NCBI GenBank assembly: GCA_946965045.2
Contig: OX337233.1
Location: forward strand, 248,001-312,000
Direction: 5' to 3'
Source: Epithemia pelagica
Taxonomy: Eukaryota > Protista > Bacillariophyta
DNA: 64,000 bases
Shown here one piece after another: positions 3,516-58,200 of the stretch. A program made the position numbers and the translations under genes. The notes under the pieces were generated by a model. It saw only the letters and a program-made list of their open reading frames with translations. It did no database searches and had not been told where the DNA came from. The stretch's first letter is position 1. Every line of letters begins with the position of its first letter.

Positions 3516-6146
3516 GGTACAGCGCTTTACTAATACGTTGACAAGAAATGGCAGCACGAGAGAAAGTATTTTTGAGAGCAACGCGTGGAAGCGCTTTGCA
3601 TTTTTTGCGTGGAGACCGTAAGGTGTGCCTGTCCTGCGTACGATGGCGAAGGGAAATCAATCGCACATAGATTTCATGACAAGCCCCAAAAAGTATCTTT
3701 TGGTCGACGACGAAAGGGAGAGAGTGACAGCATTTGTGATGAAGAGGTCCTTTTGTATGATGAATAGGTCCACAGATTGACAATCCCTAATTTCCACACA
3801 ATTCTTCCCTTGGTCCTATACAGTCTGTTCACAACGACAACAACTTCAACAGAGAGATGTTGCAAGAGAGTGGTCTTCTTGCCTTCTTGATCCAATGATT
3901 CGAATGGGCATCACTCATCGGGTATAGTGAAGGAAGCAAGGTCCCAAGTACGACTAGACAGAGACGACAATCTGACGACCTGATTGACCAGAAGGAACAT
4001 GCCATTCATCCCATTGTGACTCGCTTCCCGTGTTGCATTAGCTCGCACCAGACGCCTGCATTCGGCTTTCGAGAATGTCACGTGGATGTGGTTGGACCGC
4101 AAAGGTTGGTCTCCTATGTCAGTATTGATACCGACTCCATCAATCATGGTCTTTTTGGGAGAGCCAAATCCGTCTCGTGCCGTCTGCGCCGGTTGTCAGC
4201 AATGCTCGCGCATGCGGTTCAATGATTGTGCAGACGGCCGCATATCGCACTGGCTCAATGGCCTCCGTTCGCGAGGGTGGGAGTCAGGACCTGTGCTACA
4301 TTTACCAATGGGTGAACTTGTCGTCTCGATTGAAAACCACAAGAGTTCAAGGAACAAAAGGTAGACCAGCGGAGTCGTCGTTTGGATCCACCTGGGGTCG
4401 AGAACGTACAAGAGTTTTATGTGTCAGAGGTTCCGGCAAAAGGACCTACAGCCAAAATAGAGCCAAACTTGATGAGGATTTCACGACAAATAAGAGAAGC
4501 CAGACTTGACAATCAATCAACATTCCTGTCCTACTCGTGGCAAGGTTTTGTTCGGGGAGTTTGTCATATAGCCCCTCTTGTGCTTGTTGTCGCTTCTTGC
4601 TGATTCTGCCGATTAGCTCGAGGTACAAAGATTGTCGTGGTGGAGTGGTGTAACCAATAACAAAACCAAAGTATAGAAGCAGAAACCATCCATGCTCGAT
4701 TTCCACCACGAAGAACCATCAGAAGTGGACAACAGTGACAACAAGAATCGCCTTGATCCATCCAAACAACACCAACTATACGAATCGTCTATCTCTTTCA
4801 TCAAGGATGACGACAAGAAGTGAAAAATCACAATCCCTGATCCACCAACAGCAGCCAAACACCAACAACAAGAACAATCGTCTCTTGCACAACAGGTCGA
4901 TCGATTCATCACCATCTCAATTGGTGGATCACATGACGACTTCGAAAGCAGTTGCCTTTTGTTGGAACAAGGTCCACCAGAAGCACAGTCTTGGGAATCG
5001 GAGCACCACCAATATTTGTACCCCGTCGACGGATTGGTTGCTCCACAACGAGACATTGACATCAAGAAAGAGGAATCGACGACGACCCACGATAAACCTG
5101 TCCTGCCTGCAGCACGGGAAGTATACTTTGCACTTTTGCCATTGCAACGGAAACAAAACGAAGGCAAACTGTGTTGGCTGCTGTCGGATCCAGCCGTTGC
5201 TACCAGTCCATGGCCCCACCGACTGTCCCACAACTATACGATCATGGTCGAAACGTCGCTTGTTCCTTATATGCCATCATTTGAAGAGACACAATTCAGT
5301 TTGCTCTTTTTTGTCTAAAAGATGCAACGAGGCCATGAAAGACCGCCATCTTCCGTTGAAAGATGATTCCTTCTGATCAAAGCCAGAGAGTTTTCAACAG
5401 CACAGAGAGGGAACGGTACCATGGCTATCTACCCAAGAGTGGTTACCAAACATTGGCAGGTTTGCAGAGGACGGCAGTGTCATGGCGGACGCTGTAACAA
5501 GGTTTCGTCAAAGAGTAGGTAGTGACTGCCCTTCTGCACTCTCTGTCTGTCTTTCGCTACCAGAGAACCCACGACAGAGCGAAGAGTAGGGATTGTACCT
5601 CTCTAGCTAGAGAGAGAAGCGGTCGATCCCATTTCTGTATGCTTTGGTCGATCGGGATCTTGCTCGAGTGCCCACCTACCTCTATCGATCAAGGCTATAT
5701 CCTTGGATATACCCGTGAGCCTCCAACCAAACATTCTTCTTTGGAAAGCGGAGCGCTTGAGTCGTACGCTGGATTCTGCTCGAAAGGATCCCATCCTACG
5801 GTGTTGTGCAGGCCTAAGAAACGACACAAAAAACTAGGTAGGACTATAAGCAATAAGAGACAGCCAAACTGATGTTTTGAGCAAGATAGACGCAGTGGAA
5901 CGTTGGTCGGTCCAAACGAAGGACGGCTGGTGTTCTTGGGTGACATTTCCGCTTCCTATTCTGCAAAATGACGTCAGTGCCAAAGAGGAAGTATGTCAAG
6001 ACTGATCACACTTTCCTTTTGAATAAATCCGTTGCCTAGTGGTGTTGTTCATACCATTCCAATTTGTGGTTCTGTGAAGCAAAAGTGAGTTGAACCATCC
6101 TGTTCCAATGGGGTGTTTCCTCCGCTTGATTATTCTTTCTATCAAT

Positions 6147-8904: not shown

Positions 8905-11234
8905 TCATGAAATCTTTAGAGCATCAAAGAGCTTCTCAACTCGATCCTGATTGTGGGACGGCTTTCGCAATAGGTTCTTCGGCGACTCTTCACATGCCAC
9001 AAAGGCATGCGAAGAATAGATCTCGGTCTGCTCCAAACCATGATACAGGTTTCGAACTGCGTTTGAGACACCAAATTCATCCTTCTCGGGTACGCAAACC
9101 AAACGGAAGACATCGGTGTCCGGAAATGGCTTCAAACTCATGGAACTCAGGTTTTCATCGGAAATAGTGGGAGTTTCTGAGCAGCCCAGCAAAATAATAA
9201 TACACACGGCGGTGGGTTCCGCTTCATCCTTTCGAAGGTCTTTCAGAAACTCCGTCATCGTGGCCGACCAAAGATCAACATCTGATTTCGAAAAATTGGC
9301 CCAATTCTTGACAGTCACAAGCAGAGGATGAAACGTGCAGCGTGCCGGGGAGACCTGTTTTACCCTGATCGATGCCGCAATATCAAAGGCCTTGCAATTC
9401 TTGTAGGCATAGCTGGCAAGACCTGCGAGATAAAGGCGGCTCAAAAATGTTTGCTTGCAGAAAGAGTTTGCTCGAAAATCATTTCGGCAAACTTGGATAA
9501 AAGATATGGTGTTTGAGGTTTCTCCAATTCTCTCTTGGGTTGTAAGGATGGCAGCGTCAGAGTCCATCGCTAGATATTCAGGATGGGCATTTCCCTCCGC
9601 AACTTCCGGGCTGGTGTCGGTTGGTTTTCTGCCGCCCCTTTTCAAGAGTCGAAACCATTCGTCCAACGAAACAGAAAACAGTAAAGCTCAGGGTCCGCCT
9701 CTTTTCGAAGCACATCACCGCAGAAAAGCATGTACAAAGCGGCAAAAATTTCGACCGCGTCGCCCTTATCGGGTAGACACAATTTGGTTGTGAATGCCTT
9801 CTCCGCCTGGTGCGTCCAAAATTGCTTCCCGTGGCCCTGGAGCTCCCCGTCCTTCCACGTTTCGTCCATCAACCGCATGGCCAGGGTCGCGCACAGAGGA
9901 TCCGGCATGAATGTCACTTGTGCCGCAGGAGTAGAGGCATTGGTCTCCTGTTGCCGAAAGCTGACCAAACAGGCGTATCCAGAGCTCACCAGTTCGGTCA
10001 ATGTGTCAAAGGAGTTGACGATTCCCATCTGCACTCGCGTACCCAAAACGCTGTAGCAGGCAGGAAGATCCCTTTCATAGTTTGCTGATGACAACACCAA
10101 ACGCTTTGAAAATTCTGTCAGCTTTTTCTGATTTAGCGTTTTTGTGTTGGAGTAGTAGGCAAACAAAGGTCTTCCGTAGATAACCGCATCCGGAAATTGT
10201 GACTCTTTGGATAATGGTGCGCTGGAGCTGCTCAAAGTTTCTTGCTTCTCCTTTCGCAAACAAGAAATTGTATTCAGCTCAAAAAAAGGCGGATACAACA
10301 TCTTGTTGTCGGCATCACCGGCTTTATAATTCACGTATGTGACCCTTGCTTTTCGTGAAGCACCTTGCCTCGGGGGATCTGGTGGGAAAAAGTTGGAGAG
10401 CTTCGCAGTCGTTCCAGCAAAGACGGCAACCACATGGACGTTGCGCTGTTTCCGCAGCCACCATCGAATGGCTCGAAACACAAGAGAACCCTTCCCTTGA
10501 ATGTCAACTCCTTCCATCAGACCTTGTGCTTCATCGAACAGAAGTACCACTTTGTCACTCAATCCACGAATAATGCTGTCCATTCTTGCAAAGACAGCAT
10601 CCACTATGTCGTCATTGTCGGTGACTTTGACGAGATAGTGGTCAAAAAACTGTTTTTGTTTTTCTTGGCTCAGATGTGCGTCAAGGCAGAGGATGGTTTT
10701 ACAGTGTTGTCCTTCATGTTGGCCATAACGGTCGCGAAACTCTTTGAACAATTTGGTTTTCCCCATTCCACTTGATTGAACGAGTGCAAAGTAGGGCGCC
10801 AGAAATTGCTCATGATCCGATTCATGCCAGGAAAAGAGATTTTCGATTCGTTCCTCAAATGCTTCCAAGTCGAAGGTGTGCGCAAGCGGTGTATCCAAAC
10901 CATCCACAATGCTGGGACCTCGATGATTGGATTTGGGCTCTTCAGGTTCCGGAAACAAGATTTCCAAGGCCTCTTTTGCATGATCCTGCGTAAAATTTCC
11001 ATGAGTCGAAAGTAAACATCCTTCGAGAAAACCGGCCCGAATTTTTTCATCGATTTTCCGGGAATGTATGGCTGACTTGGCTTCTTTCAACTTCGGGACA
11101 ATACTGACGTCCAAATCATTCTCGTTCGCGAATCTTAGCAACGACTGTTCGGTTCCTTCGTCCATCTCCATGTCGCTTGCACTCATCATCGTCGAATTGG
11201 CTTCCAAGCGAGGCTTTTTCGTTGGACCGTTCAT
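8905..11234 (-). CDS. P-loop NTPase fused to a C-terminal PD-(D/E)xK-like nuclease domain (Crinkler-associated NTPase-REase type), split by a 1-nt frameshift near 9678
   Basis: Walker A context APYFALVQSSGMGKTKL, Walker B VVLLFDEAQ and GTTAKLSNF. The second ORF carries AFDIAASIR..PLLVTVKN. Adding one T to a T4 run joins ..PELYC to FSVSLDEWFRLL, giving about 776 aa. Confidence 0.7.
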
Positions 11235-39307: not shown

Positions 39308-40408
39308 TCAGATACCCATACCTTCAAGAGAATGATACCATTCGTTCGATTGGTGCTCACAGAGTCGACGAAAGCACCATGTATTCTTGTCGATAAGTGG
39401 TAATGTCGCACAGGAAGGATTTTCCCATCTACCAATCACGGCAACTTGATTGGCAACAGTCACCATATTGTAGCCAGTGCGGTCATTTCCGAATGGTGGT
39501 GGGAGATTCCATACGCGGTTGCGGTGAATATCCAAGACTTCCACGGTTGAACCCCATCCTCCCGCCACCACCAGACAAGAACCCATGGCAACCACTGCAC
39601 AAGGACTTCGTGCATTGGAAAGGACCAAATCAGGGTGAGTAATCCAAGGGGACGAGAAAGAACTCAATGTCAAGCCAGTCTGCTTCTTTGTCTCTTCATT
39701 GTCACCAGGCTTTGAAAATTCCAAATACTCCACCGACTTAAGATCGTTTTCGCCTCCAACAACAAAGATGCGGTGGCCAATGACCGCACTGGCACAGGAT
39801 GCTCGTGGAACAGTCATGGATGGTCCAGCAGTGACAATGTGATTGCTGGTATCAATAATATCCACCGACGAAAAACAGCGATGGTTGTAACAGCCACCCA
39901 TTACAACAATGTATCGATCATGCACCGCAACAGCACAACATCCATTTCTTCTCGTCGATAATCGACATGTCAATGTCGTCCAATTAATCGTATGTGTGGT
40001 GCTGATTGTCGAAGATGATCGCAGCAAATCCTTTACGTCAATTCTTTCGATACAATTCAAACATGAACCTTGATTCAATCCTCCCATTACGTAGACAGCG
40101 CCATTGCACACAACAGCGGCATGTCCTCGACGACTCTTGTTTATGGGTGGTCCTTCGCGCCACTGCTTGTTCTGGTCCTCCAAATTCATTACAAGAATGG
40201 AATCGAGCTCGCCTTGGCCTTGTTGCCATCCACCCGACACGACGACGGTTTGTTCTTGGTTGTTATCGGGATGATTCAGTACGACCGAAGCATGACGATA
40301 ACGCCCTTCTCCCTCAAGAGAAGGCCAGTCCTCGAAATTCCATTCATGTGTCTCGTCTAACAGGATAAGGCCCGACTGCCATGCTTCTTCTTTCAGTGTC
40401 GTTGTCAT
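39308..40408 (-). CDS. Kelch-repeat protein, copy K8 (366 aa)
   Basis: ATG at 40408 (MTTTLKEEAW), six Kelch repeats, intact. Confidence 0.95.
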   Translation of the reverse strand: MTTTLKEEAWQSGLILLDETHEWNFEDWPSLEGEGRYRHASVVLNHPDNNQEQTVVVSGGWQQGQGELDSILVMNLEDQNKQWREGPPINKSRRGHAAVVCNGAVYVMGGLNQGSCLNCIERIDVKDLLRSSSTISTTHTINWTTLTCRLSTRRNGCCAVAVHDRYIVVMGGCYNHRCFSSVDIIDTSNHIVTAGPSMTVPRASCASAVIGHRIFVVGGENDLKSVEYLEFSKPGDNEETKKQTGLTLSSFSSPWITHPDLVLSNARSPCAVVAMGSCLVVAGGWGSTVEVLDIHRNRVWNLPPPFGNDRTGYNMVTVANQVAVIGRWENPSCATLPLIDKNTWCFRRLCEHQSNEWYHSLEGMGI

Positions 40409-40592
40409 GGTCACGGCGCTTTACTAATTCGTTGACAAGAAATGGCAGAGGGTCAACGCGTGGAAGCTTTGCTTTTTTGCGTGGAGACCGCGGTGTGCTT
40501 TTTATGGAGACAGAAAAGGTGTGCCTGTCCTGCGTACGATGGTGAAGGACAATCAATCGCACATAGATTTCATGACAAGCCCCAAGAAAAGT

Positions 40593-40615
40593 CAATAGCA
40601 GCATTTACTGTTCAT
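40593..40615 (+). repeat. Left TIR CAATAGCAGCATTTACTGTTCAT
   Basis: The reverse complement of the right end is CAATAGCAGCATTTCCCGTTCAT (2 mismatches). Confidence 0.9.
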
Positions 40616-40797
40616 TTTGAGCACGCATGTCGTTCTCCCCACCCAATACCGGTTCAGAAACATGTCACACTCACTATGCCACAATCAGTGTAAAACTACC
40701 TACTACGACATTCATTAAATATAACCGTAGACTCTACCGTGAATGAACATCCAAGACTGGCAACAGAGAAAAGCCAATGAATGGCCACAACAACGGA

Positions 40798-40878
40798 GAC
40801 TTGGCTCTTATGTAACTATGCCAAACTCATTTCAATACATAAGCCAAGGGGAGGCCGTCGTTACATAAGAGCCAAGTC
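40798..40878. repeat. Perfect 19-bp inverted repeat with 43-bp spacer in the transposon left subterminal region
   Basis: GACTTGGCTCTTATGTAAC (40798-40816) / GTTACATAAGAGCCAAGTC (40860-40878). Confidence 0.9.
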
Positions 40879-41146
40879 GTTGTGTAAGTGCCCCCCCCAA
40901 CCCCTCACTTTCCGAACCCCATTTTCCCAATTTTCACTAAGTCTAAACGTATGAGAACACAATTCGAGAACTCGCCCGACGATTTTTTTATAAAATTTAT
41001 CGGTATATGAATATTGCATTAACCGAGAGTCGCATTTCAATCATCGGTTCTAAAATCAATCGCAGAACCCGAAGCCAATATCCAGAAGACGATGACAACA
41101 AACTCCGTGTAAAGTTCTTGGTCTGCACCTTTCAAGAAGCGAAGAT

Positions 41147-44100
41147 ATGACAATCAAACAATCAATTTACCTTCTGGTTGTTGAGAGAACCATGCCTACC
41201 ACCCGTCAAGCCCAGCGGCTTGCCTTGGAGCAAGCTGAAGAAGAAATGAAAGAAGCAGAAGCGGCTCCGATTTCACCTAACCAACAGACCAGAGCCAAAC
41301 GCAAGGAGCTGAAGCGTCCTCTACATTCCAGTTCTTTGGAACGCAAAAGGATTGCCCGTATCTGCCGTGATTTCGAGAAAGAAGACACGAAACCATGTTC
41401 TGTTTTCGGCCGAGATCGTTACCAACGTTGGGAAGATTTCTTCTTTTGCAGCAATTGTAAAGATGCCGACGAGCAAGAAACGGCTTTTCCGAACACTCCC
41501 ATCAATCGGAAAGCCGAAAATGGTCGGTTTACATGCACATGTTCTCACGACAACATCATAATGCCTACAGACACCGTAAAGGTCGAAAGTGTCAAGAACA
41601 GACCCAAGAAACGTAAAGCCCGTCGTCGTCCTCGATTTCGGAAAAACCATCGTTCCAAGAAGTCCAAGGGAGCCGTTCCGACGCCCGTTTGTATCCCTGA
41701 AGATCAATCTGAAGCACTCAAGTCTCCTACCAACGATGAAGAAGGGGTTAACACTCAAGACAAATCGGTTTCCTCCAAAGAAGATGACGACTCCTCGGTT
41801 GCTTCGGATGATTCTGAATCCACGTATGGCATATTTGCCGATTCTGAATCGGAAACAACAGAGAAAGAACCTTTGACCGAAGGAGTCTCTGTCCTCACAT
41901 GCAGTGTGACCAACTCTTCCACTTCGTTCTCTGGTATGACGACGAACCAGTTGTTGTCGCAAGTCCAAAAGGCTAACGCTGCCTTATCCTCCAAGCAACA
42001 AGAAACAGAAATGGCCCTCAAAAACAAGGAAATGGAAATCCAGTCGTTAAAGCTTGACATCAAAAAGGTTCGCCGACAAAGCAAGAAAAAATCAAGGAAA
42101 ATCACAAAGTTGGAAACTCGCATTATCGAGTTACAGTCAAGCAATGAGGAACGTTCCAAACTTCCCAAAAGAGCTTCCGACAAAGATAAGGGCACCAAGA
42201 TCATTGCCCACATCAAAGTCACTATTTCCAACGCCATCCTTCGGCATGGAAAGACAAGTGACCGTGCCGAACGATTCCTACGGTCTCTCTGTAAGATGTT
42301 TGTGGATGGTAACATCCACCACGGCATGATGAGAGACGTGTTGGTGGAAGTCGTGGGAAAACACTTGCGCAACACAGTGTTCACACCCTTCAGGATTCTA
42401 TCCGAGATGGATAGAACAGGTGGTGTTCTCAACTATGAAGGGATCGAAATCCTTCGTCGGGTCGAAACGAATGGACAAAAAAACAAGCATACCATCATAC
42501 CAAGCACATCTTCACTACAGAACTGTGCAGCAATGATCGAGCGCTATGGGTCTATTGTTTGTCCTTTTCGCATGATAAGGAACGAAAGAGATTCGACAGA
42601 AGGCTTCTATTTTAGGGCCTGTGATGTAATGAGGGCGATTCTTCAGTCAGGTGGACTCATGGATGGCATTGCTGCTGATCGCCCTGTCAATCTTTCCCAA
42701 AGCCTCGATGGCGCGCAGCTAACGAAGCATCTGTCACATACCCTGGGAGGTCTAAAATTCAACGATGCTTCGAATCCATTGAAGCAGTCAAGGAATTCTG
42801 TGTTCCCCGTTGTTTGTGTTATAGGAAGAGAGACTACCTCAATCGTTCGTGGCCTTTTTGCCCGAATGATTCAGGAAATCGACGAAGCAGCAACGACTGT
42901 TCTTCCAAGTCAATATGGAATCAAGCCACCTAAGATCGCAACCAATTGCGATATGTCCTGTGAGTGGAAACTCACAGGACGAGGTGGTGCTGCAAAAGTT
43001 TGTAAGTATCCGTGTAGCAAGTGCTCTATAGCCTCCTCGGACTTACATTTACAAACACGACTGCCTACAGAATGCAAGATATGTATGCATCTAAAGCATA
43101 CTGACGACGAAGAATGGAAATGCCGTCACGTCGATATGTGTACGGGTGAGCACGTTGCTCTTATGAAGGAGGACATCGACAAGTTCAAGGCGGAATGTCC
43201 GGTGGTGGCAGAAGAAATTAAAGAAATCCAAAAGAAATCGAAGATTCGTACCGACACCAATCCATCCTTCCCTCCCCATGACATCGCACGTACTTCGTCA
43301 GACAACATCCACTTTGACATCCAGGAAGCCGACATCCAAGATAAGCTGGAGTATTCTCGCAATGTCAACCACGATCTACAGCTACGCAAGCTATCGCTTG
43401 TAGGGCCTTTGTCGCAACGTCAAGAACGACTGAGAATTCAGCTGATCTCTGAATGGACGTATCAACAGGCCTCTCTCCGAGTAAAGCAGTTCGGACAACC
43501 AGGAAACAAGGATGTCTCTGGCGCGTTGGTAATGATGATGGACGCTGTGCCCTGTTTGCTTCATTTGGAAAACCGAATGGGCATAAAGATTTTATCAATG
43601 TGTCTGAAATCAGGGCTGACTCATACGAAGAATGATGAACAAGATTGGGTGAAGGAGGATGACCGTTCGTCAATTGATAGGAAGTGCCAGGCGTTTGTGG
43701 AAAAGGTGGAGGATGTCATCAATTCCTCTATATTGGGAACTCCGATGCAACCACAGCAATGGATTTTACCATACGACCGACGAAAGAACTTGGTCGGTAC
43801 CATTACAATGGACAATGTAAAGATCCGGAAAGTGATTCAGGAGATTGACATCCTGATTGATCCGATGATACAAGATTCCACCAAGAAAGAGAAATGGAAG
43901 ACGTGTATTGGGCATTACCGCCAGGCACTGGAGATTGTGAACCGGAAACACGACCTCTCAAACGAGGAGATATGGGAGTTCCAGAAGCAAGCGGATTATT
44001 TCTTCAAGTTGTGGATTGAATTATACGGAGCTGAGGGAGTTACCAACTATGCCCACGTCATCGGAAGTGGGCATTTGCGCGAATACCTCCAGCACTGGAG

Positions 44101-44566
44101 AAACCTATCCAACCACTCCCAACAAGGATGGGAGGCGTTTAACAGCGCATTCAAGACTTACTATTTCTCAAGGACTCAAAGGGGTGGCGCAACCAACAAG
44201 GGTGAAGGACCTCAGAGCCGTCTGAAATCCATGGCTAGGTGGATCCAAAGACGAATGGTGTTTCTGTTAGGAATCAGTGAGGACGAAATTGAAGAAACTC
44301 TGGCTTCCAACCGTGCTTGTGATCCGACAGAGCCAAGTACCGTGGCTCAGCATGGAGGGACTATTGAGTTTGGTCAGCCTGTGGGTTTTGCAGTCCGAAA
44401 CCAAGACGACGTAGAGAACAACGAAGAATTTGAATTTGATTGGGAGGTTGCTTTGGACAAGAGGGACGACACAACAAATAAGCAACAAGATGGAAATAGG
44501 GACGACGATGACGATGACGATGACGCCGAGGACTTTTCCGACTGGACGAGTGATGGATCAATCTAA
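41147..44566 (+). CDS. RAG1/Transib/Chapaev-like DDE transposase, 1139 aa, intact
   Basis: Motifs occur in RAG1 order: SLDGAQ (1st Asp), TNCDMS (2nd Asp), YPCSKC (ZnC2), DAVPCLLH, VTNYAHVIGSGH (ZnH2; RAG1 has ITNYFHKTLAH) and SQQGWEAFN (catalytic Glu; RAG1 has ASEGNESGN). It also has a basic NLS-like stretch, a coiled coil and an acidic tail. Confidence 0.8.
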   Translation: MTIKQSIYLLVVERTMPTTRQAQRLALEQAEEEMKEAEAAPISPNQQTRAKRKELKRPLHSSSLERKRIARICRDFEKEDTKPCSVFGRDRYQRWEDFFFCSNCKDADEQETAFPNTPINRKAENGRFTCTCSHDNIIMPTDTVKVESVKNRPKKRKARRRPRFRKNHRSKKSKGAVPTPVCIPEDQSEALKSPTNDEEGVNTQDKSVSSKEDDDSSVASDDSESTYGIFADSESETTEKEPLTEGVSVLTCSVTNSSTSFSGMTTNQLLSQVQKANAALSSKQQETEMALKNKEMEIQSLKLDIKKVRRQSKKKSRKITKLETRIIELQSSNEERSKLPKRASDKDKGTKIIAHIKVTISNAILRHGKTSDRAERFLRSLCKMFVDGNIHHGMMRDVLVEVVGKHLRNTVFTPFRILSEMDRTGGVLNYEGIEILRRVETNGQKNKHTIIPSTSSLQNCAAMIERYGSIVCPFRMIRNERDSTEGFYFRACDVMRAILQSGGLMDGIAADRPVNLSQSLDGAQLTKHLSHTLGGLKFNDASNPLKQSRNSVFPVVCVIGRETTSIVRGLFARMIQEIDEAATTVLPSQYGIKPPKIATNCDMSCEWKLTGRGGAAKVCKYPCSKCSIASSDLHLQTRLPTECKICMHLKHTDDEEWKCRHVDMCTGEHVALMKEDIDKFKAECPVVAEEIKEIQKKSKIRTDTNPSFPPHDIARTSSDNIHFDIQEADIQDKLEYSRNVNHDLQLRKLSLVGPLSQRQERLRIQLISEWTYQQASLRVKQFGQPGNKDVSGALVMMMDAVPCLLHLENRMGIKILSMCLKSGLTHTKNDEQDWVKEDDRSSIDRKCQAFVEKVEDVINSSILGTPMQPQQWILPYDRRKNLVGTITMDNVKIRKVIQEIDILIDPMIQDSTKKEKWKTCIGHYRQALEIVNRKHDLSNEEIWEFQKQADYFFKLWIELYGAEGVTNYAHVIGSGHLREYLQHWRNLSNHSQQGWEAFNSAFKTYYFSRTQRGGATNKGEGPQSRLKSMARWIQRRMVFLLGISEDEIEETLASNRACDPTEPSTVAQHGGTIEFGQPVGFAVRNQDDVENNEEFEFDWEVALDKRDDTTNKQQDGNRDDDDDDDDAEDFSDWTSDGSI

Positions 44567-44634
44567 GAGCATAGACAAACCGTACAAATATCTGTTCAAG
44601 TGACTGTGGTATCTAATATATATTTAGTTCATGT

Positions 44635-46335
44635 TCAACGATAATTATTGACTGCTTCATAGATTTCGTCTGTTACTCTGACAATTTTTGTCTTCTGATG
44701 ATTGTGATCTTTCTTGTCGTCGTAATCCTTTCCTGCACTGGCTCCAACAACCAGGTGATACGCATTTCCCGCAGGGATACGCCCCACTACGTAGACTCTA
44801 TCCGTCAGTCCAAACCCAGCGGCCGGTTCTGGTTTGTCTGTAACGTATAGATCACCAGTTTCCTTTTCGACCACCGCCGTACGGACGAGATCATGAGGAC
44901 CGAAGATGTCTAAGATCTCCCAGACAGTGTCATCCAAGTGAAAGGATTCTCCTTTTACTATGGATAGGTCTTGTGAATCGCCATCGGGTGATTGATGGCA
45001 AGATCCAACTCTACCATTCTTCATGGGAGAGAGGGCTTCTTCAATGGAAGTATCTGTGTCGTTGCCATTTGAGGAGGTCGAATCGATTTCTATAATGGAT
45101 GGAATGGTTGGTCCAGGAGTGCCATCGGTGGAAGATTCTTGGTGACGATGGTTGAGAAGGGGAAGTTGTCCCTTCAAAGTCAATTCTAGATGCTTCGTGG
45201 GAGGAGGGTTCTTCAAGATTCCTGTTCTTGACGAATCGTACAAGTAGCGTTCGAAAGACACTGTAACACGGCATCCAAACTGCGAGAAGGACAAGTCCAC
45301 TCTCTGATCCTTGCAGCGTCTCTTGAAGGGAGACGACTCATCAGTTTCGTCATTCGGATTCACAATGGTCAAAGAATGACCGCGTTTTAGAGCTAGTCCC
45401 TTGTCACCGTGGTACAGGGTGGGACGTATTTCAGAAGAGCCGTATGTCGCTCCGAATCCCATTATGGCCCGGAGCTTGTCTAGGTCGTCGCTTGTGGCAA
45501 ACCTGATGACACCAGATTCAAAAGTAATCCGTGATTTCCGACGAGTAAAACGATTCGTCACGTCTAGGTACGTTTCCGTTGACTTGAATGGCTTGTGGAC
45601 GCATCGTTCTCGACGACTTCGTGAAAGGAGCATGCTGATGTAGTTGAAGGTTTCAACAGGGATCATGCCGATACTAAGTGCATTAGTTTCCTTGTCTTCA
45701 CTTTGTCCGGAACGCCGGTTTAGCATCTTCGAGAGTGCCTTTCGAATAAGAAATAGCCCTGTCCATATGTTGAGATGACAAGAACGGGGGTGACAAATTA
45801 GATGAGAACGGCGAGTATCATAGGAAACCATGAAACGCAATGAATTCTCGGGGATGGGGACAAGACCATGTTCCGAGTGCTCTCGGAATCGTACAACAAA
45901 CACATTCTCGACACCGTATGACCAGCGATTGACTGGAAGGTCAAGATCAGGAAGAGAAAATACAAATGCGGGATGTAGAAATTCTCTGGTGAGTATCGGC
46001 ATCCCATCTTGGCGAGGAGAGGTGACTTCCATAACCTCATTCGACATGTACAGCTCGATATTGTTGCGTCCTTGAGTGGATGGGAGAGGCAATTTGTTGT
46101 GTTTGGGAGGGTTTGGGTGGCATCGGAGCTGCTTCTTGGGAAAAAGGGGATAGAAAATATGGACTTTGATTCCATGCGGAATCCATTTGATCAGTCGGAC
46201 AATGGTTGTAGTCTTTGGATCTTGCGAGGGAAGAACCATATGAACAAAGGAACCAATTTGGAATGAATCATGGAAAATTGGAGAATAGAAAGGAGGGGCT
46301 TCGCAGTCGGGAGTGAAATCCGGAAGAAGAGACAT
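44635..46335 (-). CDS. Transposon-borne protein of unknown function, 566 aa, convergent with the transposase
   Basis: Long intact ORF wholly inside the TIRs; its stop lies 68 bp from the transposase stop. The N-terminus has a weak BAH-like beta pattern (QIGSFVHMVL..IVRLI..KVHIF), which is uncertain. Confidence 0.8.
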   Translation of the reverse strand: MSLLPDFTPDCEAPPFYSPIFHDSFQIGSFVHMVLPSQDPKTTTIVRLIKWIPHGIKVHIFYPLFPKKQLRCHPNPPKHNKLPLPSTQGRNNIELYMSNEVMEVTSPRQDGMPILTREFLHPAFVFSLPDLDLPVNRWSYGVENVFVVRFREHSEHGLVPIPENSLRFMVSYDTRRSHLICHPRSCHLNIWTGLFLIRKALSKMLNRRSGQSEDKETNALSIGMIPVETFNYISMLLSRSRRERCVHKPFKSTETYLDVTNRFTRRKSRITFESGVIRFATSDDLDKLRAIMGFGATYGSSEIRPTLYHGDKGLALKRGHSLTIVNPNDETDESSPFKRRCKDQRVDLSFSQFGCRVTVSFERYLYDSSRTGILKNPPPTKHLELTLKGQLPLLNHRHQESSTDGTPGPTIPSIIEIDSTSSNGNDTDTSIEEALSPMKNGRVGSCHQSPDGDSQDLSIVKGESFHLDDTVWEILDIFGPHDLVRTAVVEKETGDLYVTDKPEPAAGFGLTDRVYVVGRIPAGNAYHLVVGASAGKDYDDKKDHNHQKTKIVRVTDEIYEAVNNYR

Positions 46336-46679
46336 CGTCTAATGGATGGTGGATCAATGAAACCAAATGTTAGCCAGTAAAGATAGAGGGCGGTGGTGAA
46401 GGGGATGTAATTTGTTGATGAATCTTGAGAACAACATTGTCGTCGGGGGTGGAACGGTAGTGGAACTCCGTTGCCATTGGATGGAGGTACGATGAGAATC
46501 ATTTGGGAAACCGAGATGGCTAAAACCGGGTCAGAATTCGGAAGGAAAATTACTGTCTGAGTGGGACTGTATTTAACAAAAACGTGGGGGGAACCATTAA
46601 GGATACTTAGGCGCGTGAGCCTGTGTTTCTGCGCGTAAGCGTAAAAAAGGGGGCTGGCCACCTTTTTGGAACCCTTCGG

Positions 46680-46702
46680 ATGAACGGGAAATGCTGCTAT
46701 TG
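46680..46702 (-). repeat. Right TIR ATGAACGGGAAATGCTGCTATTG
   Basis: Inverted copy of 40593-40615; followed by host TATCTTTTGGTCGACGACG. Confidence 0.9.
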
Positions 46703-47514: not shown

Positions 47515-48717
47515 TCAAGTTCCATCCTTCCCTTCATCACCACGGCGTGTATTGGGCCTTGCGCGTTTATGAGCTGATGTCGAGGTGGAGAAGGGTGAAA
47601 TATCAGCATGTTGGATATTCATTCCTTCCCCAAAAAGACACCATCTGTTGGGCTGCTGCTCACAGAGTCGTTGAAAACACCACGTATGCTTGTCAAGTAG
47701 TGGTAATGTCGCACAGGTAGGGTTATGAAATCCTCCGATCACGGCAACTTGATTGGCAACAGTCACCATACTGCAGCCAACGCGGTGATATGCGAATGGT
47801 GGGAGATTCCAAACGCGGTTGCGGCGCGTATCCAAGACTTCCACGGTTGAATGGCCTTGTCCACCCGCCACCACCAGACACGATCCCACAGCAACCATTG
47901 CACAGGAACCTCGAAGTTCGGAAAGCCTCAACTCCGAATGAGCGGTCCAAGTGTGTGAGGAAGAAATGAACGTTGAGCCAGTCTCTTTTTGTGTCTCATC
48001 ACTGTCACAGGGTGTTGCATAGTCCAAATACTCCAACGAGTCAAGATGGCCATTATAGTTATGCCCCCCAACGACAAAGATGCGGTGGCCAATGACCGCA
48101 CTGGCACAAAATTGTCGTGGAACAGTCATGGATGGTCCGGCAATGACAGTGTGGCTGTTTGTATCTATAATATCCACCGACGACAAATAACGATTGCTGT
48201 ATCCACCCATTACAACGATGTATCGGTTGTGAACCGCGACAGCACAACACCCATGTCGTCCAGATGATAACCGGCATGTCAATGTCGTCCAATGGCTCGC
48301 ACGTGTGCTACCTGTTGTCAAAGATGATTGAAACAAATCATTCAAGTCAATTCGTTCCAGACAATCCAAACTTGAATCTCGATGGCGTCCTCCTATCACG
48401 TAGACTCTTCCATTGCACACAACAGCGGCAGGTCCAACGCGTTCCTGGTTCATGGGTGGCCCTTCTCGCCACTGTTTGTTCGGTTCTGCTAGATTCAATG
48501 CAAGAACGGAGTTGACATAGCCTTGGCCTTGTTTGAATCCTCCCAACACGACGACGGTTTGCTCCTTGTTGTTATCGGTACGATTCAGTACGACGGAAGC
48601 ATGATAGTAACGCCATCCACCCTCAAGAGGAGGCCAGTCCTCGAAATTCCATTCAGGTGTCTCTTCCAAAAGTACAAGGCCCGACTGCCATGCTTGTTCT
48701 TTCACTGTCGTTGTCAT
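47515..48717 (-). CDS. Kelch-repeat protein, copy K9 (400 aa from MTTTVKEQAW)
   Basis: Six Kelch repeats, intact. Confidence 0.95.
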   Translation of the reverse strand: MTTTVKEQAWQSGLVLLEETPEWNFEDWPPLEGGWRYYHASVVLNRTDNNKEQTVVVLGGFKQGQGYVNSVLALNLAEPNKQWREGPPMNQERVGPAAVVCNGRVYVIGGRHRDSSLDCLERIDLNDLFQSSLTTGSTRASHWTTLTCRLSSGRHGCCAVAVHNRYIVVMGGYSNRYLSSVDIIDTNSHTVIAGPSMTVPRQFCASAVIGHRIFVVGGHNYNGHLDSLEYLDYATPCDSDETQKETGSTFISSSHTWTAHSELRLSELRGSCAMVAVGSCLVVAGGQGHSTVEVLDTRRNRVWNLPPFAYHRVGCSMVTVANQVAVIGGFHNPTCATLPLLDKHTWCFQRLCEQQPNRWCLFGEGMNIQHADISPFSTSTSAHKRARPNTRRGDEGKDGT

Positions 48718-48826
48718 GATCCCAATGTCGACAAGAAATGGCAGCATGAGAGCGGGTCTATTTGTATAATAGAGCAACGCGTGGAAGTGGAAGCTTTGCT
48801 TTTTTGCGTGGAGACCGGCGCGCGTG

Positions 48827-55207: not shown

Positions 55208-58200
55208 CGTGGAGACAGAAAAGGTGTGCCTGTCCTGCGTACGATGGTGAAGGGCAGTCAATCGCACATAGATTTCATGACAAGCCCCCAAAAGTATCTT
55301 TTGCTGTAAAAGATACGACGACGAGGGAGAGAGAGAGAGCGACATTTGTGATGAAGAGTCCTTTTGTATGATGAATAGGTCCACAGATTGACAATCCCTA
55401 ATTTCCAAGTCATCTCGTCCCACGCCATTTATGGAGCAACACCATTCTTCCCTTGGTCCTATACAGTCTGTTCACAACGACAGCAACAACAGAGAGAGTG
55501 GTCCTCTCTTGACTTCTTGATCCAATGATTCGAATGTGCACCGCTCATTGGGTTGTTTTCGAGAATGTCACGTGGATTTGGTTGGACCGCAAAGGTTGGT
55601 CCTGTGGCAGACGCGTATTGCACTGGTTCAAGGGCCTCCATTCGCCAAGGTGGGTGTCAGGACCGGTGCTACATTTGCCAATGGGTGATGGTGTTGTCTC
55701 GATTGAAAACCACAAGAGTTCAAGAAGGAAAAAACTAGACCGGATGAGTCGTCGCTTGGATGCACCTGGCGTCGAGAACGTACAAGAGTTTTGTGTGTCA
55801 GGCTATGTCAAATTGCCGGTGTCAAACCACTAATGACGAAAATACACCGTTGCAACAATAGAGGCCCTTGGAAATTGCAGGATGAAACTGACAGATTCGA
55901 GAGTTGCATTCTTGTGGGTCCTTTCGAAAAACATCCAGTTCCGCGATTTCTGAAACAGAGGTGGTAGGACAACGGCAAAAACAGGAACTAGACAATGACA
56001 GAGTGGCGTTGTCCAATGCCAGTGTGTTCTCTGACATGAAACATCGAACGCGAACATGGATATCGACTGTGAATCCAAACCTGATAGCAGCAGCAGCGGT
56101 AACATTGCAGTTTGAGTATGGCTCGATCGACTCTCTGGTGTTTACTGGCCTGGAGTTTGGTCCTTAGTTTGACAACACCCGACAAGCTTCAAGCAATGTC
56201 CTTGTCGATGCAAGGACGGCAACCAGAATGCATCTCTTCAGCCAACGTGACGCAAGTGTGCTTTCGTATGATGAAGAGGTCCACAGATGGCCAATCCAAC
56301 ATCCAACATCCACTGAGTCGATATCCCTAGTTTCCAAGTCATCTCTCGTCCAAAGCCTTTTATGGAGCGCCATTGTTCCCGTGGTCATGCGGACTGTGCA
56401 CAATGACAGCAACAACAACAACAGAGAGTGGTCTTCTTGACTTCTTGATCCAAAATGATTCGAATGGGCATCGCTTTGTGACGGAACCAAGGCCACAAGC
56501 ACAACTACGCCAAAACGAGAATCTGACGACAAGATGGACCAGAAGGAACATGTCATTCATCCCATTATGACTCGCATCAGGTGTTGCATTAGCTCGCAGC
56601 AGAAGCCTGCATTCGAGGAGACAAGGCAGTAAGACCACAAACAAGAGTATATGTTAGTATCGAGCCCGAAGAGAAGACCGTTCATTGACAAGATGGAGTG
56701 ACTGAACTGATAAGACAAGACGGCGACAAGAATCGCAAATTCTCAAGAATGAGCAAATTGGCGGTTCACATTCCAGATCTCGAATGACTAGACATCAGAT
56801 CCCCGAAAACAAACGATGCAGTACCATCATACATGCTAGCCAGCCAGAACACGGCAAACAGGACGAAGAGAAGGACACTGACAAAAATGAAGATAGTAGC
56901 TCCGACGAACGGAGGAGCAAGATTAACAGTCCAATTGCAAGAACATTTCTGGCGCTTCTTGCAGTGTCGCTTCCCGTTCCTCCACAAAGGCGAGAATAGG
57001 GTACCGCGATGGTTTTTGAACCAACAACAGAAGACAAGTTCCATTGAACAACTGTCGACCTGGTAGTGCCAGTCGAGAGACTAGTTCCTTCCACTTGCTT
57101 CTCAACGACAGTTCCATTCCGTCTTTGCTCAATCAACAATCATTCGTTCTTCACATGACGACGAGGAATGTAGAGAAGCAGCAACCAACCATGCTCGATT
57201 TCCAAAAAGAACCATCAGAGAAGCGGACTACAGGGTCCGCAAGGTTTCGTCATTCGTGCTTTTACTCCTCCGTCTCGTCCTTTTGTCGGATTCATCGACC
57301 ACGACCATGAACCAAGCCAAAACATGGAGCACGACCAGATGTCGAAGCTTATGGTTCGTGGAGGAAAGGAGCAAAGACAATGCAGTCACTTGATTGTACT
57401 ACGATATGTTGACGACAACATACAACAACAACAACCAATTACACCCAAACAACAACAGCAAGAACAACCATCCTGCTCTTTCATCAAGGAGCATGACAAG
57501 AAAAGAAAAATCATGATTCCCGATCCACCAACAGGACCGAAACAACAACAACAACAATCGTCGGATGCACAACAGGCATCCCGTTTTGTCCTCCCTCTCG
57601 TAGGAGTGAATGATTGGTTTTGATCGATCATCGGCAATTGGTGTGGACCAAAGAACGACTACCACGACAAGTTGGTTATTTTGGAACAGGGTCCACCAGC
57701 ACCCCAGACTGAAACGACTGACACAGTAGCACAACCACTACCTTTACGGCGTCGAGTGATTTGTCGCTCCAACAAGGAGGAACCAACCACAAGAGGAACA
57801 AGCCGATGCGGCAAGAACCGCCAGGACTACACATGCTTCTTTACTCAAACCAGACAAGAAGTCCACCAATATCAAAACCAATTACTGCGGAGACTCTCCC
57901 TCGGTGTTCTTCAAGTATTGTTTGGATGGTAACAAATGATCCACCAATGGTCGTGGTCCACAGCAAAACTGTGTCGTAGCAACAGCATCCCAAGCCAAGA
58001 AAGAAAGGATGGAACACCCTTGACAGACACGGCAACCACAATGTCAAAAAACCATGCCTGAATTTGCCCGGTCACGAACCCTAAAAGTACTCTTCACTGC
58101 TCAATCGTAGTGGACACAAAATGGCGACCAACCGTATTGCCCTTGGCTACGACATCGATGCGAAACTCGTCCTTTCTGGAGTGCACCACTGTCGGCTTCC

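Follow-up and report, generated by a model that had tools for sequence, protein, structure and literature searches.

The 64,000-nucleotide stretch of the genome of the diatom Epithemia pelagica analysed here (the window; contig OX337233.1, positions 248,001 to 312,000 of the forward strand) carries at positions 40593-46702 an element of 6.1 kb bounded by terminal inverted repeats (TIRs). We read it, with a probability of roughly 0.8, as a complete and probably autonomous cut-and-paste transposon that encodes an Asp-Asp-Glu (DDE) transposase of the RAG1/Transib fold and represents a new lineage of the CMCT clade. This clade comprises EnSpm/CACTA, Mirage, Chapaev and Transib, most of them with 5'-CA..TG-3' termini (PMC12730594). 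The element has precisely defined ends, a target-site duplication (TSD) of a single base pair and a record of recent spread to several loci. Its transposase gene (open reading frame 1, ORF1) has conserved residues and a RAG1-type fold, and is accompanied by a convergent partner gene (ORF2).

Ends, target-site duplication and copies

The element and its insertion site are defined by the following features (window coordinates):

40593-46702: whole element, 6.1 kb, bounded by TIRs
40593-40615, + strand: left TIR, 23 nt, 5'-CAATAGCAGCATTT...
46680-46702, - strand: right TIR, 23 nt
40592: left copy of the 1-bp TSD (T), a single T in the empty-site paralogs
46703: right copy of the 1-bp TSD (T), from the empty-site comparison
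40616-41146, + strand: 5' non-coding region of the element
3680-3710, + strand: paralogous empty site 1, single T at ~3694
55280-55320, + strand: paralogous empty site 2, T at ~55295, then an extra palindromic stretch
39308-40414 and 47515-48777: flanking Kelch-repeat genes

The TIR arms, recovered by an inverted-repeat search of the window, are complementary at 21/23 positions (91%). Self-BLAST of the flanks within the window found the left and right flanks contiguous in two paralogous Kelch-array spacers, at ~3694 and ~55295. The empty site reads AAAAGT followed directly by ATCTTTT, while the filled site reads AAAAGT[CAATAG...CTATTG]TATCTTT. This comparison fixes the element ends to the base and establishes that exactly one T was duplicated. 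The first-pass annotation, made from the letters of this DNA, had described the same 23-bp TIRs and one empty-site paralog fixing the ends; the repeats are as it described them and the paralogs are two.

The insertion lies in a spacer of a tandem array of diverged Kelch paralogs, other members of which are found across the window, and the element occupies the upstream side of a Kelch-repeat gene that starts 178 bp away. Sequencing-run word depth is tens of times higher on the Kelch spacer than on the element. Empty site 2 carries a palindromic extra stretch (TATCTTTTG-CTG-TAAAAGATA, window 55295-55315), ~10 bp rightward of the point that corresponds to the insertion in the filled spacer. Run X2 contains a variant of this palindrome as a loose end. 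The stretch may be palindromic by chance, or may be the footprint that hairpin-type excision of an older insertion left behind. In the 5' non-coding region upstream of ORF1, a perfect inverted repeat of 19 bp (40798-40816 / 40860-40878) encloses a loop of 43 bp.

The length of the TSD was determined in nine elements: the window copy, its sister copies L004 and L009, and the diverged elements L001, L003, L005, L006, L007 and L010, the last on a contig of an unrelated sequencing run. L008 (Seminavis) and L002 (a metagenome contig), in which clear TIRs were not found, were left out of the count. The base outside the left end equals the base outside the right end in 9/9 elements (T, T, G, A, T, A, C, T, T), an agreement with a chance of ~(1/4)^9. 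Each of the four bases is represented and the repeat has direct and not inverted orientation, so it is a TSD and neither a target preference nor a part of the TIR; the TSD is 1 bp. Duplications of 2 bp (GT) or 3 bp fitted the first two elements and were rejected on L003, L004, L006 and L007. We know of no eukaryotic cut-and-paste superfamily with a 1-bp target duplication. The literature search agrees: no transposon with a 1-bp TSD, and no transposase with a partner carrying a BAH domain, was found described.

The termini are 5'-CA...TG-3' in all nine elements, CAATAG...CTATTG in the window copy. Most elements start with CAATAG(C/G)AGC, which is kept in the diverged L001, L003, L006 and L007; L010 has CAATACCAGCC. 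The L007 member, whose TIRs are at 2945-2968 and 8931-8954, lies within a larger structure with inverted arms of 55 nt (91%; 2860-2914 / 9282-9336) and 35 nt (80%; 2597-2631 / 9567-9601), which is another TIR element or a foldback. At L005 the family member adjoins a DUF6818 gene and a gene for a DDE_Tnp_4 (Harbinger-type) transposase (308-2749), and so has another transposon as its neighbour.

The sister copies L004 and L009 are located on other contigs of the public assembly ERZ21939226. L004 is 99.6% identical to the window copy over 6115 bp and L009 98.97%, and in both the similarity halts exactly at the TIR ends, the flanking DNA being unrelated. ORF1 of L004 carries D602N, which replaces the second catalytic Asp by Asn, and ORF1 of L009 is split by a 1-bp deletion (frameshift) into pieces of 627 and 493 amino acids. 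Only the window copy among the three has an intact, catalytically complete ORF1. The window copy and L004 show 22 differences, 18 of them coding (12 synonymous and 6 non-synonymous). The ratio of non-synonymous to synonymous substitution rates (dN/dS) could be computed for this closest pair only, comparisons between subfamilies being saturated in dS. It is 0.10 in ORF1 and 0.23 in ORF2, and both genes have therefore been under purifying selection during the recent spread. The element was, by its copies, recently mobile and is probably active. The first-pass annotation had suggested that it may still be active on account of its intact ORFs, a suggestion with which the near-identical, TIR-bounded copies now found at unrelated loci agree.

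Run contigs matched to the locus place the element in three sequencing runs, and a fourth (X4), which comes from another sample (S3), carries an L009-type variant. The X4 contigs follow this variant from 43621 to 46099, the end of the compared stretch, with 17 differences in ORF2; to the left of 43621 the element has no match in them at a threshold of 95% identity. The set of copies may therefore vary between strains or samples.

The transposase ORF1 and its convergent partner ORF2

Both genes named in the first-pass annotation, of 1139 and 566 amino acids (aa), are unbroken. Their features are:

41147-44566, + strand: ORF1, DDE transposase, 1139 aa, unbroken; start may be Met16
41396-41548, + strand: ORF1 N-terminal Cys/His cluster (C84, C101, C104, C130, H134), at least 90% conserved in the alignment
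42299-44311, + strand: ORF1 core, aa 385-1055, multi-domain RAG1/Transib-like fold in the predicted structure
42707-42709, + strand: codon of D521, predicted first catalytic Asp, invariant; strand beta-1 (model strand 131-140)
42950-42952, + strand: codon of D602, predicted second catalytic Asp, invariant in the family alignments; just after beta-4
43013-43024, + strand: C623-x2-C626, CxxC half of the predicted zinc site, invariant; 21 residues after D602
44054-44074, + strand: H970-x5-H976, His half of the predicted zinc site, invariant; H976 lies 20 residues before E996
44132-44134, + strand: codon of E996, predicted catalytic Glu, in SQQGWEA, invariant; first turn of model helix 611-626
44635-46335, - strand: ORF2, accessory protein, 566 aa, convergent with ORF1, stop codons 68 bp apart
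45841-46302, - strand: ORF2 aa 12-165, BAH-like domain from structure matches; local model confidence ~75-85
44638-44976, - strand: ORF2 aa 454-566, small beta-barrel (SH3/Tudor/chromo/KOW-like), weak (Z 5-6); local model confidence ~73-86

Local confidence is the predicted local distance difference test score (pLDDT). The five motifs on which the first-pass annotation had built its comparison with RAG1 (SLDGA, NCDMS, CSKC, NYAHVIGSGH and SQQGWEAFN) are all present in the order given there. Alignments of 24 and 27 relatives, reaching down to 20% identity, keep D521, D602, C623, C626, C646, C659, H806, H970, H976 and E996 invariant. The N-terminal Cys/His cluster is a putative zinc-finger DNA-binding domain.

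A profile search of 1.84 billion representatives identified 3949 ORF1 family members at E<=1e-3, 608 of them with E<=1e-30. Most matches are found on contigs of 3-7 kb from metagenome or run assemblies, and only one relative is named, a hypothetical protein of the diatom Seminavis robusta. The element belongs to this large family of two-gene elements without a Pfam model, present in diatoms and in metagenome and run assemblies. A homologue search by broad alignment, whose match words came from the low-complexity N-terminus, returned same-genome copies only. Among the same-genome proteins P0012-P0025, one ORF1 subfamily ends right after the catalytic ...QQGWEG and is missing FNS..RGG..RW.QRR, a conserved region of the C-terminus; these short C-termini may stem from an artefact of gene calling, from an intron or from a truncation.

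The AlphaFold2 model of the ORF1 core has a pLDDT of 83.4 and a predicted template modelling score (pTM) of 0.69. D521 is placed on the first beta-strand, D602 immediately past the fourth and E996 in the first turn of a helix, which is the arrangement of RNase H-like enzymes. Foldseek against the PDB returned 49 matches at E<=1e-3, all 49 of them RAG1, amphioxus RAGL (BbRAGL) or HzTransib (best E 4e-9), followed by the P element at E 0.05. VIA-align gave Z scores of 20.5 for HzTransib, 20.2 for RAG1, 18.8 for BbRAGL, 11 for the P element and 6.7 for Hermes, with ~450 residues aligned between model residues 22-666 and RAG1 residues 459-1007. The spacing of the motifs in ORF1 (D521 -81- D602 -21- C623xxC626 ... 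H970x5H976 -20- E996) mirrors that of RAG1 (D600 -108- D708 -19- C727xxC730 ... H937x4H942 -20- E962; PMC4914335). The comparison of predicted structures proposed in the first-pass annotation has in this way led to a RAG1/Transib-like fold with a D..D..CxxC..HxnH..E layout.

ORF2 is the conserved and obligatory convergent partner of ORF1. Eleven ORF2 homologues were found, and those located sit convergent beside an ORF1 homologue. The loci with a convergent pair are L001, L002, L003, L004, L005, L006, L009 and L010. Such a pair is encoded by a Joint Genome Institute (JGI) metagenome contig (ORF2 homologue of 24% identity, E 4e-24) and by an unrelated run contig (hhalign probability 99.3%, E 1e-20). 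A remote ORF2 homologue occupies the same position at the S. robusta locus L008 (probability 70.6%, E 3.9e-5).

Three structure searches support a BAH-like fold for aa 12-165 of the ORF2 model. The top 50 Foldseek matches in the PDB are all BAH domains (E 1e-4 to 5e-3), VIA-align to BAH domains gave Z 8-10.4, and in a scan of 48,161 chains independent of Foldseek the top 18 matches are again all BAH (Z 6.5-9.8). The Swiss-Prot entries matched in the AlphaFold database are BAH proteins (MTA1-3, ORC1, MET1, polybromo, SHL, EBS and SIR3). From this fold a chromatin-reading role may be proposed for ORF2. ORF2 gave no match in Pfam, the BAH model included. No propeller or RAG2-like fold was returned for it in the structure libraries searched, and a RAG2-like partner was rejected on these grounds.

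Placement within the CMCT clade

The C(2)C/H(n)H motif layout and the RAG1-like fold are common to the whole CMCT clade, which is known in plants, fungi and moss and has TSDs of 2-5 bp (PMC12730594). The element presents the predicted DDE triad (D521, D602, E996) on an RNase H-like fold, the C(2)C feature (C623-x2-C626) and the CA..TG termini. Its two invariant His are in the expected place, H976 being 20 residues before E996, but with a wider spacing than published for the clade. The Transib/RAGL core fold (DDBD, preR, RNH, ZnC2/ZnH2, CTD) is also recognised in the model, but is not specific, CACTA-type predictions being equal in this respect.

To our knowledge no structure of a CACTA, Mirage or Chapaev (CMC-type) transposase has been solved, and RAG1 and Transib are therefore bound to be the top PDB matches for any CMCT member. 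In a shape search of the ESM Atlas the template modelling (TM) scores were 0.54-0.57 for Transposase_21 (CACTA) clusters and 0.53-0.57 for RAG1 clusters, 0.58 for a DUF1280 cluster and 0.60-0.63 for unnamed rotifer and Mucoromycota clusters. Protein-language-model features, to be taken as a lead and not a test, gave 0.95-0.96 for RAG1_RNase_H and DUF1280 clusters, 0.87 for Transposase_21 and 0.84 for Plavaka. Since predicted Transposase_21 structures fit about as well as RAG1, the element is best placed in the broad CMCT clade and not specifically in the RAG lineage.

Several observations weigh against a complete, mobile transposon of a new CMCT lineage. The 1-bp TSD falls outside the published range of the clade, and all members have H-x5-H as their His motif, which exceeds the CMCT H(3-4)H by one residue. 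Pfam gave noise only, with no family match for ORF1 or for 32 relatives (23 core and 9 divergent). Sequence searches of the PDB returned no RAG1/Transib match with the protein, the core profile or the D..D..CxxC and H..H..E sub-profiles, so that the link between ORF1 and RAG1 is made by fold and motifs only. The residue match to RAG1 itself was drawn from motif spacing and model strands. The ORF2 model is moderate overall (pLDDT 65.5) and its BAH matches are marginal in score (E ~1e-3, Z 8-10). In the run contigs an empty allele is indistinguishable from the paralogous spacers, the flanks being multi-copy. Finally, the status of the family as undescribed is taken from Pfam and the literature only; the literature search (diatom Transib/CACTA, 1-bp TSD, stramenopile RAG1-like, Lanisha) found no description of it.

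An alternative that we regard as unlikely is that the element belongs, as an ordinary member listed in Repbase or Dfam and outside the scope of Pfam, to a superfamily already known (EnSpm/CACTA, Mirage, Chapaev, ESTA, Plavaka or Lanisha). The CA..TG termini, the C(2)C and HxnH motifs and the RAG1-like fold fit the CMCT definition, DUF1280 and Transposase_21 are among the nearest named clusters, and diatom genome papers list "EnSpm" repeats from automatic classification. The 1-bp TSD in 9/9 elements lies, however, outside the 2-5 bp of every CMCT lineage reported, none of the Pfam models for Transposase_21, DUF4218, Plavaka, DUF1280 and RAG1 matches any of the 32 family members, and the literature holds neither a 1-bp TSD nor a BAH partner. 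With EnSpm/CACTA the element shares a CMCT-type DDE core with C(2)C and His motifs, a second element-encoded protein, CA..TG termini in which CAATA is one position off CACTA, and predicted structures matching at TM 0.54-0.57. It differs by the TSD (1 bp vs 3 bp), by the lack of a Transposase_21 or DUF4218 match in the family and by a second gene, which lies convergent and resembles BAH proteins instead of TnpA. Each of the two ORFs is also unbroken, whereas CACTA transposase genes are described in PMC4158355 as typically multi-exon. Mirage, Chapaev, ESTA, Plavaka and Lanisha have the same motif set and CA..TG ends, and are likewise very divergent and tied to RAG1 by structure-aware methods only, as ESTA by HHpred. 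Their reported TSDs are of 2-5 bp (TA for ESTA) and never 1 bp, a convergent BAH-like partner has been reported for none of them, and their hosts are animals, fungi and moss, not diatoms (PMC12730594). The nearest named ESM Atlas clusters carry DUF1280.

Membership in the Transib/RAG lineage itself, in a sister position to Transib/RAGL, with CACTA, Mirage and Chapaev more distant and with a layout homologous to that of ProtoRAG, is very unlikely. HzTransib and RAG1 are the best PDB matches, but this ranking cannot discriminate as long as the CACTA, Mirage and Chapaev structures are unsolved, and predicted Transposase_21 matches equal RAG1 (TM 0.57 vs 0.53-0.57). Language-model features are nearer to RAG1_RNase_H (0.96, 190 shared) than to Transposase_21 (0.87, 117-128 shared). 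The likeness to Transib, RAG1 and ProtoRAG covers the whole core fold (Z ~20 over RAG1 residues 459-1007), the succession and spacing of the motifs D, D, CxxC, HxnH and E, and ends that start with CA; ProtoRAG also has two convergent genes within short TIRs, and RAG2 has a PHD finger as the ORF2 partner has a chromatin-reader-type fold. Against this, sequence similarity was not detectable with Pfam, PDB sequences or profiles (no RAG1-domain match in 23 members at E<=10 in Pfam), and the TSD is of 1 bp in the diatom element and of 5 bp in Transib/RAGL. Ends of the latter follow a CAC heptamer consensus (CACAGTG/CACGGTG-like), unlike CAATAG(C/G)AGC. The partner is BAH-like, with no Kelch or RAG2-like propeller as in ProtoRAG, and the host is a diatom.

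The first-pass annotation had proposed an undescribed two-gene lineage of the RAG-related superfamily outside animals, with ProtoRAG as its parallel. What holds of this is a TIR-bounded two-gene transposon with a RAG1/Transib-like fold, absent from Pfam and from the literature searched, and the convergent layout. The specific tie to RAG is not supported, and the parallel with ProtoRAG is limited to the layout: motif layout and fold belong to the CMCT clade at large, already known outside animals, CACTA predictions match about equally, and the 5-bp TSD, the CAC heptamer-like end and the RAG2-like partner were not found. The 1-bp TSD, the most unusual trait of the element, had escaped the annotation.

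A reading of the gene pair as a domesticated host locus, or as a relic no longer mobile, with incidental inverted repeats, which intact ORFs under purifying selection would fit too, is extremely improbable and contradicted by the structure of the copies: three that are nearly identical sit at unrelated loci and are bounded exactly by TIRs, the TIR termini are conserved across subfamilies, empty sites exist and sister copies carry inactivating changes (D602N in L004, the frameshift in L009).

Proposed mechanism and significance

For a transposon of a new CMCT lineage the following cycle can be proposed. The N-terminal Cys/His finger of ORF1 would bind the CAATAG(C/G)AGC ends and its N-terminal coiled coil would help to pair two subunits, giving dimers on the ends. 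The predicted RNase H-like catalytic core (D521, D602, E996), with its split C2H2 zinc module (C623/C626, H970/H976), would excise the element at its 5'-CA...TG-3' ends, possibly by a nick-then-hairpin chemistry analogous to that of RAG and Transib. Reinsertion with a 1-nt stagger would then generate the 1-bp TSD. ORF2, with its BAH-like N-terminal domain and small C-terminal beta-barrel in the predicted structure, would probably tether, regulate or license the transposase complex on chromatin.

The 1-bp TSD implies that the target is captured in another geometry than by RAG and Transib, with their stagger of 5 bp. The family spans thousands of clusters at 50% identity and has no Pfam model, and its members are therefore probably unannotated or mislabelled in algal genomes. 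The intact and evidently recent element of the window is a candidate tool for mutagenesis or transgenesis in diatoms.

A wider proposition, which we advance tentatively and would not yet favour, is that diatoms and the source organisms of the related contigs harbour a large, unnamed superfamily-level RAG1-fold lineage, independently paired with a chromatin reader (BAH and Tudor-like barrel) and using a unique 1-nt stagger, of which the window copy is a live autonomous member. If so, this copy would be usable as a native transposon tool for diatom genetics, and the family would be a natural experiment from which to learn why enzymes of the RAG type recruit partners that read chromatin. RAG1 descends from a Transib-type transposase that worked with a partner, RAG2, and it is the PHD finger of RAG2 that recognises histone marks. 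If a RAG1-fold enzyme has been paired with a chromatin-reader-like protein a second time, independently and in a diatom, this would point to such partnerships as a solution to which this class of enzymes returns, and not as an accident of vertebrate ancestry.

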